Numbered from the stretch's first letter, positions 1-8,389 are shown. The stretch: DNA of 64,000 bases from Rebecca billardiae RCC1528 (GCA_965240325.2 OZ251233.1:248001-312000); one strand, 5' to 3'. Notes: generated by a model not told the origin, from the sequence alone. A program made the numbers and translations.

Positions 1-178
1 ATTGAACTACCGTATACTGACTACTACCTACGACTCATACTGTGCCCCCGGTTCCGAGCGCGGCGAGCGCCAGTGACTAGACGCTCAGCGTGCGTGCGGT
101 AGGCGCCTGATTGTGAAGGCTCATGCGGTGGGCATGCCGCTCGCCGTCGACGAGACGCGGTGCGCGAGTGATCCCGTT

Positions 179-1018
179 TCATGGTGTGTTGGGGAACACC
201 TCGGCATCGACCGTCACGACTTTGAAGCGGCGGTTGAGCGCACGCTGCTGCTCGAGGTTGCGACCGGGCGGGAAGATGTGCTCGTAGGGGTACTGCATGG
301 CCAGATTTGTCGTGAACACGCGTGGCATGTCTGCGGGGATCTTGGCATTCGTGTAGCGCGTGTGCACCGATCGCTCGTAGTTGGGGTCGAGCATCTTGAT
401 CACGGCCTTGGCCGTCATGTGCGTGAAATCCATGTCGTCGAAGACGATACCGTCGTTGCGAGCCGTCAAATCCTTCAGGTCATCCATCTCGGACACGAGA
501 AGAGGGTTCTCGAAGTGCGACAGCCCGAACTCCGTCTTGCCGTGGCCGGATCCACCTGCGAGCACGACAGCCATCCCATCAGAGAGGTCGAGCGGCAGTC
601 GCGCAAACGAGCTCATGGCGAAGCGCGGCGTGACGCCGCTGCCGTGTCGGTGGCGGATCATGGCGAGCACGGCATGGCCGTAGCGGTAGTAGATCGACGG
701 GTGCTCGCACTGCAAGATGTCCGCTGCCTCGTCTGCAGACTGTGCTGCGTGCAGCGCGCGCGCCCAGTCGACGCCGCACACGTCGAGCGGCTCTGGAATG
801 GTTGCCCAGTTGGCGCTGATGATGAAGTTGGACGGCCCCTCCTTCTGGCAGTAGTGGATGCACTTCGCCAGGTCACGCTTCGTCGGGCCCATCGGCTCGT
901 GGTACGCTCGCAGCGTGCCCCAGCCCTGGAGGGGGAGGTCAAAGGCTGTGACCAGGCAGTCCGTCTTCATCTCCGATCCGATGACGGCGTGGAAGTGCCA
1001 AGCGCGGCTGAGTATTGT
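179..1018 (-). CDS. rep: CRESS-DNA virus-like Rep (HUH endonuclease + SF3 helicase), copy 1; motif I and start codon not found
   Basis: The frame stays open upstream of the ATG at 970 and reads TILSRAWHFHAVI (HUH motif II, 989-997). It continues with GRS-like TAFDLP..YH, motif III YCQK (842-853), Walker A GGSGHGKT, Walker B IVFDDM, motif C VFTTN and Arg finger ALNRRF. In-frame stop upstream at ~1079-1081. Confidence 0.9.
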   Translation of the reverse strand, partial: TILSRAWHFHAVIGSEMKTDCLVTAFDLPLQGWGTLRAYHEPMGPTKRDLAKCIHYCQKEGPSNFIISANWATIPEPLDVCGVDWARALHAAQSADEAADILQCEHPSIYYRYGHAVLAMIRHRHGSGVTPRFAMSSFARLPLDLSDGMAVVLAGGSGHGKTEFGLSHFENPLLVSEMDDLKDLTARNDGIVFDDMDFTHMTAKAVIKMLDPNYERSVHTRYTNAKIPADMPRVFTTNLAMQYPYEHIFPPGRNLEQQRALNRRFKVVTVDAEVFPNTP

Positions 1019-1323
1019 GCGGCGGGCTTGCGGCGGGCGGGGTACGGAAGGCCAATAGTGGCGTCGAGGGTGCCGTCTCTAGTGAATGATATGTGCCCGC
1101 CGGCCGCCGGCGTAACTAAGTAGGGACTAGCACTTCTTGACTTGGCGGAGTGGCGGACACATACAGCTTGATGCTATTGCTACTTGCATGATTATGGCCG
1201 GTCTGCCGTCGAGCGAGCGTGCGCAACTAAACTGCATAGGTAGCTCACCCACCGCCGGCCCGCCACAGACTGTACCGTACCCCACCACAAAACCGCTTCG
1301 CCGCCCGCCCCAACCGCGCGCGC

Positions 1324-1556
1324 GCCGTGGAACGGCATCCATGACCTTTTGGTTCGGAACGAGCGGACCAGAATGGAATCCGTCTCGTCTGGAGAAAGCG
1401 CTCGCTTTCAATCAAAAACTTTCGTCGGATTCGCTTTTGGACGCTCGCTGACGAGGCAGACTATCATGGACCCAAGAGGGCTTGTGGGCGCTCAGGATTC
1501 AGATAGTATGACTGCGTACCCAAGATCTTGCGTGTGCGTATGTCCGAAAAGGACAT
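1324..1556 (+). ncRNA. Candidate structured RNA/ssDNA domain present in all five complete units; family unidentified
   Basis: Stems read by eye: 1347-1356/1364-1373, 1382-1389/1450-1457, 1394-1400/1403-1409, 1460-1465/1502-1507, 1513-1524/1527-1538 (one internal mismatch), 1540-1545/1551-1556, and long-range 1338-1344/1464-1470. Several mismatches are G.U wobbles on the + strand. Confidence 0.35.
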
Positions 1557-1638
1557 GGTTCACGTGTTCAGTAATCACCCACCCGCGTGTCCTTAAGTGA
1601 AAGGCGGCCCCCCGGATGGTGTTTCCCTAAAGCGCGGC

Positions 1639-1717
1639 TGCCGGTTCAGGCAGGGCGTGCGGCCACCTGGTATACCGATAGTGCGATACGGGCCGCAGCA
1701 GTGAGCACGGAGCCGGC
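1639..1717 (+). other. Nested ~80-nt hairpin directly before the (TA)n tract (candidate terminator or origin signal)
   Basis: Nested pairs GCCGGTTC/GAGCCGGC, TGCGGCC/GGCCGCA and GTAT/ATAC. The block is duplicated with a 96-bp period in units 2 and 5. Confidence 0.5.
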
Positions 1718-1720
1718 CGT

Positions 1721-5781: not shown

Positions 5782-5891
5782 TATATATATATATATATAT
5801 ATATATATATATATATATATATATATATATATATATATATATATATATATATATATATATATATATATATATATATATATATATATATATA
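5782..5891. repeat. (TA)55 microsatellite
   Basis: Pure TA run. Confidence 0.98.
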
Positions 5892-6068
5892 TTGAACTAC
5901 CGTATACTGACTACTACCTACGACTCATACTGTGCCCCCGGTTCCGAGCGCGGCGAGCGCCAGTGACTAGACGCTCAGCGTGCGTGCGGTAGGCGCCTGA
6001 TTGTGAAGGCTCATGCGGTGGGCATGCCGCTCGCCGTCGACGAGACGCGGTGCGCGAGTGATCCCGTT

Positions 6069-6909
6069 TCATGGTGTGTTGGGGAACACCTCGGCATCGA
6101 CCGTCACGACTTTGAAGCGGCGGTTGAGCGCACGCTGCTGCTCGAGGTTGCGACCGGGCGGGAAGATGTGCTCGTAGGGGTACTGCATGGCCAGATTTGT
6201 CGTGAACACGCGTGGCATGTCTGCGGGGATCTTGGCATTCGTGTAGCGCGTGTGCACCGATCGCTCGTAGTTGGGGTCGAGCATCTTGATCACGGCCTTG
6301 GCCGTCATGTGCGTGAAATCCATGTCGTCGAAGACGATACCGTCGTTGCGAGCCGTCAAATCCTTCAGGTCATCCATCTCGGACACGAGAAGAGGGTTCT
6401 CGAAGTGCGACAGCCCGAACTCCGTCTTGCCGTGGCCGGATCCACCTGCGAGCACGACAGCCATCCCATCAGAGAGGTCGAGCGGCAGTCGCGCAAACGA
6501 GCTCATGGCGAAGCGCGGCGTGACGCCGCTGCCGTGTCGGTGGCGGATCATGGCGAGCACGGCATGGCCGTAGCGGTAGTAGATCGACGGGTGCTCGCAC
6601 TGCAAGATGTCCGCTGCCTCGTCTGCAGACTGTGCTGCGTGCAGCGCGCGCGCCCAGTCGACGCCGCACACGTCGAGCGGCTCTGGAATGGTTGCCCAGT
6701 TGGCGCTGATGATGAAGTTGGACGGCCCCTCCTTCTGGCAGTAGTGGAGTGCACTTCGCCAGGTCACGCTTCGTCGGGCCCATCGGCTCGTGGTACGCTC
6801 GCAGCGTGCCCCAGCCCTGGAGGGGGAGGTCAAAGGCTGTGACCAGGCAGTCCGTCTTCATCTCCGATCCGATGACGGCGTGGAAGTGCCAAGCGCGGCT
6901 GAGTATTGT
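6069..6909 (-). pseudogene. rep: CRESS-like Rep, copy 3, with a +1 frameshift
   Basis: Extra G at 6749 (GTAGTGGAGTGCAC versus GTAGTGGATGCAC) breaks the frame just before YCQK. Could be a sequencing or assembly error. Confidence 0.75.
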
Positions 6910-7707
6910 GCGGCGGGCTTGCGGCGGGCGGGGTACGGAAGGCCAATAGTGGCGTCGAGGGTGCCGTCTCTAGTGAATGATATGTGCCCGCCGGCCGCCG
7001 GCGTAACTAAGTAGGGACTAGCACTTCTTGACTTGGCGGAGTGGCGGACACATACAGCTTGATGCTATTGCTACTTGCATGATTATGGCCGGTCTGCCGT
7101 CGAGCGAGCGTGCGCAACTAAACTGCATAGGTAGCTCACCCACCGCCGGCCCGCCACAGACTGTACCGTACCCCACCACAAAACCGCTTCGCCGCCCGCC
7201 CCAACCGCGCGCGCGCCGTGGAACGGCATCCATGACCTTTTGGTTCGGAACGAGCGGACCAGAATGGAATCCGTCTCGTCTGGAGAAAGCGCTCGCTTTC
7301 AATCAAAAACTTTCGTCGGATTCGCTTTTGGACGCTCGCTGACGAGGCAGACTATCATGGACCCAAGAGGGCTTGTGGGCGCTCAGGATTCAGATAGTAT
7401 GACTGCGTACCCAAGATCTTGCGTGTGCGTATGTCCGAAAAGGACATGGTTCACGTGTTCAGTAATCACCCACCCGCGTGTCCTTAAGTGAAAGGCGGCC
7501 CCCCGGATGGTGTTTCCCTAAAGCGCGGCTGCCGGTTCAGGCAGGGCGTGCGGCCACCTGGTATACCGATAGTGCGATACGGGCCGCAGCAGTGAGCACG
7601 GAGCCGGCCGTTATATATATATGGCTGCCGGTTCAGGCAGGGCGTGCGGCCACCTGGTATACCGATAGTGCGATACGGGCCGCAGCAGTGAGCACGGAGC
7701 CGGCCGT

Positions 7708-7769
7708 TATATATATATATATATATATATATATATATATATATATATATATATATATATATATATATA
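7708..7769. repeat. (TA)31 microsatellite
   Basis: Pure TA run. Confidence 0.98.
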
Positions 7770-8389
7770 TTGAACTACCGTATACTGACTACTACCTACG
7801 ACTCATACTGTGCCCCCGGTTCCGAGCGCGGCGAGCGCCAGTGACTAGACGCTCAGCGTGCGTGCGGTAGGCGCCTGATTCTTGTCCCGCCAGCTTCTCA
7901 TCAGTCACACAGGCGCCGCCCACTGAGCCTGAGGTGACAAGGTAGTGAAGGCTCACTGTGAACCGATGGCGGCCTCCGTAAATCCGATGGACGCGAGTGA
8001 TGATTTCCGCGAAACGGGTCACCCGCGTCGGAGCTTCCCGTCAGGCCGTTGCCCGGCCCTGTTCCGCTCGGCGATGGATCGATCGAGTCGACGAGTGCCA
8101 CGATGGGCGATGACTGCCGGCATGGTACCGTATTAGTATACGAGGCGGGGCTGACGGGCGGACCGGGCGGCCGGAGGACTCGGCGCCGGGACGGCGGGAC
8201 CCGAGCGCGCTCGCGGATCCTGGCAGTGCCCCCCGTGCTGGCGTGCTGCCTCCCGGGCATCCGTAGCTACCAAGTAAACCATTGCTGCGCTAGGCGCATT
8301 AGCTTGCTCGCGGACCGTCCCGCAATCGGACGCCTGCCCTTCAGCACGCGGTTGCATGCCCACGAGTCTGCCGCGGTACGGTACCGTAT

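Follow-up and report, generated by a model that had tools for sequence, protein, structure and literature searches.

Tandem arrays of endogenous geminiviral rep sequences are known from plants, as GRD in Nicotiana (tobacco) and as EGV1 in Dioscorea (yam) (PMC5014472). The locus described here, found at the start of a stretch of 64,000 nucleotides that was analysed as a whole (the window), resembles them in that a partial rep of a circular ssDNA replicon lies in nuclear DNA in head-to-tail copies, some of them open and some broken (PMC5014472). However, EGV1 units still contain a second viral gene as well as the intergenic region that bears the origin hairpin, whereas in the window array nothing but a Rep fragment, about 860 bp at most, is viral, the remainder of the unit being unrelated. 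Moreover, its host is most probably a haptophyte alga and not a plant, and its units, which include Rep-less variants, are parted by long (TA)n tracts. A viral gene is joined to host DNA at this locus and three Rep-bearing units stand head-to-tail; the best reading is that it represents a further case of a known kind of element, the tandem endogenous Rep array, like the tobacco and yam geminiviral insertions.

Other systems share less with the locus or share different features. The window Rep has motifs II and III, Walker A and B, motif C and the arginine finger in common with Reps of the Cressdnaviricota, but it is devoid of the N-terminal part including motif I, and the locus has neither an origin nor a capsid gene. 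In Helitrons the Rep has two tyrosines and is fused to an SF1 helicase of the Pif1 type. Association with a rolling-circle enzyme is common to them and to our locus, and tandem arrays are possible in both; nevertheless, the SF3 fold of the window helicase and the motifs, with one tyrosine in motif III, exclude a Helitron identity. Replitrons are likewise eukaryotic genomic elements, present in algae, whose single-tyrosine Rep is distantly related to CRESS Reps, but no helicase is present in their transposases, and short direct repeats form the termini of the elements (PMC10288648). Since an SF3 helicase is fused to the window Rep and no direct repeats were seen at the unit ends, a Replitron identity is excluded as well. 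Finally, integrated CRESS Reps were used for host assignment in Entamoeba and Giardia (PMC7493932). There, as here, an integrated Rep points to a protist as the host of a metagenomic Rep lineage that is uncultured, although the host group is a different one and the insertion in the window was amplified within a satellite.

Layout of the tandem array

The array occupies positions 1-7955 of the window. Three of its units are long (about 1.9 kb) and two are short (about 1.0 kb); with a partial unit of 187 nt they are arranged head-to-tail in the order long-long-short-short-long before the partial one. In their common sequence the units are 99.7-100% identical, and every full unit closes with a (TA)n tract, n being 31-91. 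The start of the window coincides with the start of a unit, and the left edge of the array falls outside the window. The right edge lies within a unit, not at a TA tract, and beyond it, at 7955, unique host flank begins. The units (U1 to U5) and their parts are as follows.

1-1902, plus strand: U1, long unit, 1720 bp and (TA)91
1902-3847, plus strand: U2, long unit, with one mismatch against U1, a 96-bp internal duplication and (TA)65
3847-4886, plus strand: U3, short Rep-less unit made of unit positions 1-112, segment X, 113-130 and 1020-1722, and of (TA)72
4886-5891, plus strand: U4, short unit composed as U3, but with (TA)55
5891-7769, plus strand: U5, long unit, with the 96-bp duplication and (TA)31
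7769-7955, plus strand: terminal partial unit forming the right array edge, made of positions 1-112, segment X and 11 nt
1721-1902, no strand assigned: (TA)91 tract of U1 (the other tracts are given separately)
3718-3847: (TA)65 tract of U2
4743-4886: (TA)72 tract of U3
5782-5891: (TA)55 tract of U4
7708-7769: (TA)31 tract of U5
3537-3728, plus strand: 96-bp direct duplication in U2, taking in the first 10 nt of the TA tract
7527-7718: the same 96-bp direct duplication in U5
3959-4022, 4998-5061 and 7881-7944, plus strand: segment X, 64 nt, in the short units and at the array edge

The sole mismatch between U1 and U2 is located outside the Rep homology, and segment X is missing from the long units. 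A scan for telomere-type repeats was negative, Rfam and tRNA scans of the array gave no matches, and the low-GC islands of the window have no repeat in common with the units. Against the adjoining host flank, neither the unit ends nor segment X scored higher than shuffles did.

Neither terminal inverted repeats (TIR) nor target site duplications (TSD) were found in the window. Outside the TA tracts and the coding region the array contains no origin-like hairpin of 9 nt or more, and a degenerate origin motif had 0 matches in the window. As to a capsid gene, no non-Rep ORF exceeds 104 aa, and the non-Rep ORFs had no family matches. There is no second copy in the other 56 kb of the window.

The truncated Rep and its metagenomic relatives

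Each long unit carries a Rep fragment on the minus strand.

182-1009, minus strand: Rep fragment of U1, 5'-truncated and otherwise open, with its stop codon at 179-181
2083-2910, minus strand: Rep fragment of U2, with the 5' truncation of U1; 0 of the 299 residues of the protein differ from U1
6072-6900, minus strand: Rep fragment of U5, with the 5' truncation of U1 and a frameshift (1-bp insertion), and no further differences

The stop-free stretch of U1 (window positions 182-1078, minus strand) corresponds to 299 aa, of which the first 20 or so codons derive from satellite DNA. Motif II (H28-F-H30) and motif III (Y76 and K79, with a single tyrosine) of the nuclease can be recognised in it, followed by Walker A (G175, S177, G180-K181-T182), Walker B (D214-D215), motif C (T256, N258) and the arginines R283-R284 of the helicase. 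None of these residues varies in an alignment with the relatives, the columns of the SF3 motifs, arginine finger included, among them; across 32 sequences H28 and Y76 are invariant, K79 being kept in at least 90%. A GRS may be present between motifs II and III: their spacing of 46 residues is compatible with one, and so are the relatives' Gemini_AL1 matches and their best PDB matches, which are to geminiviral nuclease domains.

The window protein is a genuine CRESS-type HUH+SF3 Rep, albeit a 5'-truncated one. It matches the metagenomic proteins P0001 and P0002 with E = 1e-94 and 6e-91, respectively; its identity to these two families is 54-57% and to all other sequences at most 43%, and 1535 representatives match it at E <= 1e-3. 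With the profile of the family, the nuclease domains of geminiviral and circoviral Reps of solved structure were matched at E-values as low as 1e-14, and Pfam searches with family members detected Gemini_AL1 in 9 of 32 and Viral_Rep in 7 of 32; the single window Rep gave nothing significant in Pfam (Gemini_AL1_M, E = 0.19). The AlphaFold model has a mean pLDDT of 87, with values above 90 over most of residues 100-290. Its Foldseek matches are SF3 helicases (AAV Rep40, E1, LTag and the ATPase domain of PCV2 Rep), the last of these being the best local structural match (TM 0.60-0.66). Matches to PDB entries obtained by phmmer with the window Rep were spurious, consisting of His-tag leader sequences only. 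An exact look-up of the ORF that starts at the first ATG (263 aa) returned no record, a scan of viral contigs revealed no close relative, and a tblastn search of the remaining window, in which the Rep and its relatives served as queries, yielded no additional fragments.

The truncation affects the nuclease domain. Homology to the relatives begins only at residue 24, and these extend 50-150 residues further towards the N-terminus; the first methionine is residue 37, past motif II. The nuclease domain is thus incomplete, with motif I missing and all three copies truncated at the 5' end. An HMM built from the N-termini of the relatives had no match in the six frames of positions 1-8100 (best E = 2), which rejects the idea that motif I is encoded in another frame or in an upstream exon that escaped notice. 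The frame has remained open in two of the three Rep copies, with every helicase motif present, and its GC3 is 0.84 against 0.835 for the host. An earlier note on this DNA had described near-identical head-to-tail units, each with a long (TA)n tract, and had seen no capsid-like ORF, TIR or TSD. The former description agrees with the unit identities and tract lengths given above, and the latter is borne out for the window. Its further statement that three units encode motif II, motif III and a full SF3 helicase is correct as to the motifs, but motif I is missing and U5 is frameshifted.

The relatives come from salt-marsh and other aquatic, including coastal, metagenomes. In the P0002 family we observed elements about 1.73 kb long that encode Rep alone and are bounded by terminal inverted repeats of 32 nt, in which 27-29 of the 32 nt match and which begin and end in TA; these elements occur with about six different flanks on each side. 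The P0001 family contains a 1953-bp block present in two contexts. These two closest relatives look like capsid-less Rep-only elements with defined ends, residing in several contexts. One locus, L059, was considered as the empty site of another, L053; its left side fits, but its right side is mismatched, so it is not a clean empty site. The ORFs in the flanks of the relatives, like the non-Rep ORFs of the window unit, had no Pfam matches, and the non-Rep part of the unit has no similarity to any of the 52 related loci in tblastx or blastn comparisons. The window units share no termini with the relatives; a match of 9-10 nt between the relatives' terminal repeat and unit positions 1680-1689 was at chance level (E = 1.7, with random matches scoring equally). 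Tentatively, it may be proposed that the window Rep is a relic of an undescribed eukaryotic element, capsid-less, about 1.7-2.0 kb long, encoding only a HUH+SF3 Rep, bounded by TIRs and integrating at many sites in marine protists. The array would then be a dead, truncated copy within a satellite, tying the lineage to haptophyte-like hosts. Such a TIR-bounded Rep-only element might be either a transposon of viral descent or an episome that integrates and, if confirmed in fuller genomic context, could extend the short list of eukaryotic elements based on HUH enzymes by a new type.

Junctions and origin of the array

The long units differ from the short ones by a block which is composite in origin.

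131-1019 in U1 and 2032-2920 in U2, plus strand: 889-bp block, found in long units only, host-derived filler followed by the Rep fragment
123-159, plus strand: filler and microhomology, 37 nt identical to the host locus at 25703-25739
25703-25751, plus strand: host locus matching the filler and likely its template, downstream of the IFT122 gene

The version of this block in U5 is one base longer. The virus-derived DNA accounts for at most about 860 bp of the block, out of about 1780 bp per long unit. Eight of the 37 nt are also present in the short unit and constitute the microhomology, the other 29 being filler, and a lesser similarity to the host locus carries on to about position 172. This host locus lies 18-25 kb from the long units. 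At the far junction of the Rep fragment there is a 3-nt microhomology. Thus, virus-derived gene and host DNA are joined on one molecule, with host filler at the junction and unique flank, and host genes are present further along it, GT34 occupying 9.3-10.7 kb and IFT122 20.9-25.0 kb. The presence of these genes alongside, together with an identical host-filler junction in all long units, indicates that the integration is genuine and preceded the amplification. Such a junction, in which copied host filler stands beside microhomology, provides a clean natural example of ssDNA-replicon DNA entering a protist genome.

We consider it probable that the array is an endogenous viral element, in which a 5'-truncated fragment of a CRESS-type Rep entered a host satellite by end-joining and was multiplied there through unequal exchange at TA tracts. 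A tandem repeat of about 1 kb with a (TA)n tract, equivalent to the short unit, would already have been present at the locus. A break in one of its units may have been mended by microhomology-mediated end joining, during which about 30-45 nt would have been copied from the host locus 18-25 kb away, primed on the 8-nt microhomology, before joining of a Rep fragment spanning the interior of the nuclease domain to the stop codon. While the junction sequences were observed directly, the order of these events is what we infer from them. The Rep-bearing unit would subsequently have lost 64 nt and, as the anatomy of the array suggests, spread within the array when its long (TA)n tracts engaged in unequal exchange or replication slippage, a process which would account for the differing TA lengths and for the 96-bp duplication anchored in the TA tract. 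Insertion of the 889-bp block is somewhat preferred to its deletion from a long unit, because the block is composite and begins at microhomology with its template, although a deletion of filler and Rep would give identical sequences.

The Rep fragment was a passenger in the amplification: lacking motif I and a start codon before motif II, and accompanied by neither an origin nor partner genes, it cannot have driven the process; that amplification proceeded independently of Rep follows from the Rep-less units in the array, the order of the units and the array edge inside a unit. As the Rep piece was copied along with a TA-rich tandem repeat, the array is most probably a genomic fossil of recent date rather than an active mobile element, and it illustrates that a gene captured by a satellite can reach several copies. 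The earlier note had left a choice between a recently amplified endogenous element of an uncharacterised algal CRESS virus, which fits with a genuine Rep, an algal host and near-identical copies, and a new TA-associated rolling-circle mobile element. The latter is unsupported at this locus, where the Rep is devoid of motif I, there is no origin-like hairpin, about half or less of each long unit is viral and stands beside host filler, Rep-less units were amplified equally and the edge is not at a TA tract. The idea has some substance all the same, given the Rep-only character and defined ends of the two closest metagenomic relatives.

A mobile element of another design would be a non-autonomous rolling-circle or TA-targeting one, ending in (TA)n and multiplied by read-through copying, with full-length Rep supplied in trans from elsewhere in the genome. 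The near-identical head-to-tail units bounded by TA tracts fit such an element, as do the P0002-family elements with their TA-ended repeats and multiple flanks and the P0001-family block in two contexts. Yet we regard it as unlikely, as the units have no TIR and no termini in common with these relatives, every long unit holds host filler, and the position of the right edge, the absence of a second copy from the other 56 kb and the lack of an origin-like hairpin all argue against such an element. An artefact of assembly or contamination, in which free viral or episomal sequence was misjoined to host DNA or the repeats were invented by the assembler, might be suspected from the position of the array at the very start of the window, possibly a contig end, and from long (TA)n tracts, which are difficult to assemble. 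However, 37 nt in every long unit have an identical counterpart at a host locus of the same sequence, the array is joined to unique host flank at 7955, and the differences between units are structured (short or long unit, 96-bp duplication, TA length, one indel) in a way unlike collapse or expansion artefacts, which makes this explanation very improbable.

Open frames and a GC3 equal to that of the host would also fit an expressed or selected gene. The 263-aa product, with motif III and SF3, might be domesticated and kept under selection, for example as an interfering protein, or the array might be a source of small RNAs against related replicons. Consistent with this are the intact frame in two of three copies, the conservation of all helicase motifs with a confident helicase model, and the precedent of yam EGV1, whose tandem arrays give siRNAs and whose rep genes bear signs of past expression (PMC5014472). 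On the other hand, the copies are so alike that the openness of the frame is silent on selection, one copy is already frameshifted, no evidence of an upstream exon or a promoter was found, and the region around the locus, which is at the sequence edge, is rich in satellites. Domestication therefore appears improbable, and a captured Rep fragment in a satellite is the reading that we retain.

Host context

Marine lineages of CRESS-type Reps are mostly without a known host. An integrated copy in a pavlovophyte-like genome offers a concrete host lead for a lineage found in salt-marsh and other aquatic metagenomes. The host is a flagellate alga with a very GC-rich genome, most likely a haptophyte of the pavlovophyte group; a GC content of 73% was reported for the genome of D. 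lutheri (PMC8379373). The IFT122 gene of the window shares 78% identity with an MMETSP transcript and 70% with its counterpart in Pavlovales sp. CCMP2436.

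The array and its truncated Rep gene

Window positions 1-7955 form a head-to-tail array, as seen by TRF, by a search for repeats and by aligning unit 1 to the whole window with BLASTN, and these analyses bear out the description, in an earlier note on this DNA, of near-identical head-to-tail units with long (TA)n tracts. Its components are as follows.

Units of the array
1-1902: long unit U1, ending in (TA)91
1902-3847: long unit U2, ending in (TA)65
3847-4886: short unit U3, ending in (TA)72
4886-5891: short unit U4, ending in (TA)55
5891-7769: long unit U5, ending in (TA)31
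7769-7955: partial unit of 187 nt

All the tracts closing U1-U5 are perfect, and the parts common to the units are 99.7-100% identical. The same 96-bp duplication, which extends 10 nt into the start of the TA tract, occurs in U2 and U5. The first nucleotide of the window is also the first of a unit, and the array may therefore extend beyond it on the left.

Each long unit contains, on the minus strand, a stop-free stretch of 299 codons, the opening ~20 of which come from satellite DNA; U3 and U4 are entirely devoid of Rep. A Pfam search with the single Rep sequence from the window gave nothing significant, and with 32 aligned family members Gemini_AL1 was matched by 9 and Viral_Rep by 7 of them. 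The family profile matches the nuclease domains of geminiviral and circoviral Reps with solved structures (E down to 1e-14), and the invariant alignment columns comprise motif II, motif III, Walker A, Walker B, motif C and an arginine pair. The AlphaFold model (mean pLDDT 87, above 90 across most of residues 100-290) resembles SF3 helicases, with the best local superposition on the ATPase domain of PCV2 Rep (TM 0.60-0.66, rmsd 3.0-3.8 Å). Profile, motifs and model thus agree that the earlier assignment of an HUH plus SF3 Rep was right.

The closest proteins are the metagenomic Reps P0001 (57% identity, E = 1e-94) and P0002 (54%, E = 6e-91). Beyond these two, all matches in the representative search, which without a length filter returned 1535 relatives at E <= 1e-3, have at most 43% identity. 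In one database protein, P0155 (950 aa), the match to the helicase region is confined to C-terminal residues 715-907; this protein is possibly a fusion, or else the product of a faulty gene model. GC3 of the window Rep is 0.84, equal to that of the host (0.835); in the relatives' Rep genes it is 0.65-0.75.

All three Rep copies bear a single 5' truncation, located identically in each. In the comparison with each of the relatives, homology begins at residue 24, and the relatives' proteins extend 50-150 residues further N-terminally, motif I included; an HMM of these N-termini found no match in any frame of window positions 1-8100 (best E = 2). The first methionine lies downstream of motif II. 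The proteins of U1 and U2 are identical, and the U5 copy has one additional frameshift, due to a 1-bp insertion.

Proposed capture and amplification of the fragment

Long units contain an 889-bp block (131-1019) that is absent from short units; a 64-nt segment, X, is found in short units and at the array edge, and is absent from long ones. The block is made up of two components. The 29 nt with which it opens and the 8 nt before them match a host locus at 25703-25739 without a difference, so that in every long unit the DNA beside the Rep stop codon has a 37-nt identity to the region downstream of IFT122 (locus 25703-25751). The similarity continues more weakly to about unit position 172; the stop codon is at 179-181, and Rep homology reaches 1009. 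Given this host filler, the virus-derived DNA amounts to at most about 860 bp, a gene fragment and nothing else. A low-GC island with a small TA run lies at 25301-25700, and the host filler locus is at its edge.

The 8 nt immediately before the block also occur in the short unit, and at the far junction (1019/1020) 3 nt are in common with it. Templated filler beside microhomology is what microhomology-mediated end joining characteristically leaves behind. On this basis we interpret the long unit as derived from a short one: the short unit would have been broken, and the host-derived filler and the Rep fragment captured at the break, presumably by this route. The reverse, in which short units arose from long ones, would need a deletion whose ends chanced to coincide with those of filler plus Rep, and we lean modestly towards insertion. 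In either direction, the identical junction in all long units indicates that integration came first and amplification after. Nor, given this common junction, did the amplification come from a viral concatemer.

Four features suggest that amplification was driven by unequal exchange or slippage at TA tracts and that Rep was a passenger. Units lacking Rep were amplified too and the order of units is mixed, TA lengths are unequal, the duplication is anchored in a TA tract, and the array edge falls inside a unit.

For the rest of the unit, ~900 bp, no family match and no similarity to non-Rep DNA of the relatives were found, nor was a hairpin or a TIR. A degenerate 9-nt origin motif had 0 matches in the window; the absence of an origin hairpin rests on the hairpin search and not on this one. 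A nonanucleotide of the origin-motif type is given in PMC5014472.

Metagenomic relatives and known systems

The P0002-type gene resides within the same ~1.73-kb block on 8 contigs from several coastal metagenomes (L002, L003, L053-L056, L061, L062), at 98.1-99.8% identity. Six distinct flanks occur on the left and six on the right, in varying combinations; these combinations could partly result from assembler switching within a repeat, and it is the count of distinct junctions that is robust. The block has exactly terminal inverted repeats of 32 nt (27-29/32 matching; score 39-49 versus a shuffle maximum of 20), with TA at both its start and its end. Its sole gene is a complete Rep that includes motif I and is 360 aa long when counted from ATG; no capsid ORF was found in the element, and no TSD is evident at the block apart from a possible TA. 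The right end is shortened in some copies. Contig L059 carries on the left flank of L053 (a ~20-nt tandem motif) across the insertion point with no Rep element there; it was rejected as a clean empty site for L053 (L053:279-2496), because its continuation is unlike the right flank of the latter.

The P0001-type block (1953 bp, 99.85% identical; L001, L057, L058) occurs in two contexts with flanks differing on both sides, and has a 23-nt inverted repeat, one arm lying 5-27 nt in from the left end and the other ~90-112 nt in from the right. Contigs of distant relatives (~30-48% identity to the window Rep) have a second ORF of 240-410 aa, which the closest relatives lack, and several of them are circular. 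The window units have no ends in common with the relatives' elements.

Two classes of HUH transposon were ruled out by the SF3 helicase of the window Rep. The helicase of Helitrons is SF1. Replitrons have no helicase (PMC10288648). We place the locus among the endogenous geminivirus-like tandem insertions known from tobacco and yam (PMC5014472), from which it differs in being a bare gene fragment, in sitting in a TA-punctuated host satellite and in having a haptophyte host. The metagenomic relatives are a more novel lead than the window locus.

Surroundings of the array

Outside the array the window has 70-80% GC, and contains the following features.

Features outside the array
9329-10705, minus strand: host gene near the array, GT34-family glycosyltransferase
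20885-25045, plus strand: host gene IFT122, mostly in one long ORF
27323-36118: LRR-containing ORF
36333-47767: GC-rich satellite, 222-bp unit, about 51 copies, 93% matches
47948-64000: GC-rich satellite, 213/434-bp unit, reaching the window end

The two large satellites make up 43% of the window. IFT122 has 78% identity to an MMETSP transcript and 70% to Pavlovales sp. CCMP2436. The PacBio-based genome of Diacronema lutheri has 73% GC, and the paper describing it does not mention viral elements (PMC8379373). An AT-rich island in the array flank (8376-8520) contains (TA)11 and two copies of a ~60-nt motif, and its similarity to the array units is not significant. A tRNA-like sequence with an ambiguous two-base anticodon, called by ARAGORN at 28462-28548 on the minus strand within a GC-rich ORF region, is probably a false positive.
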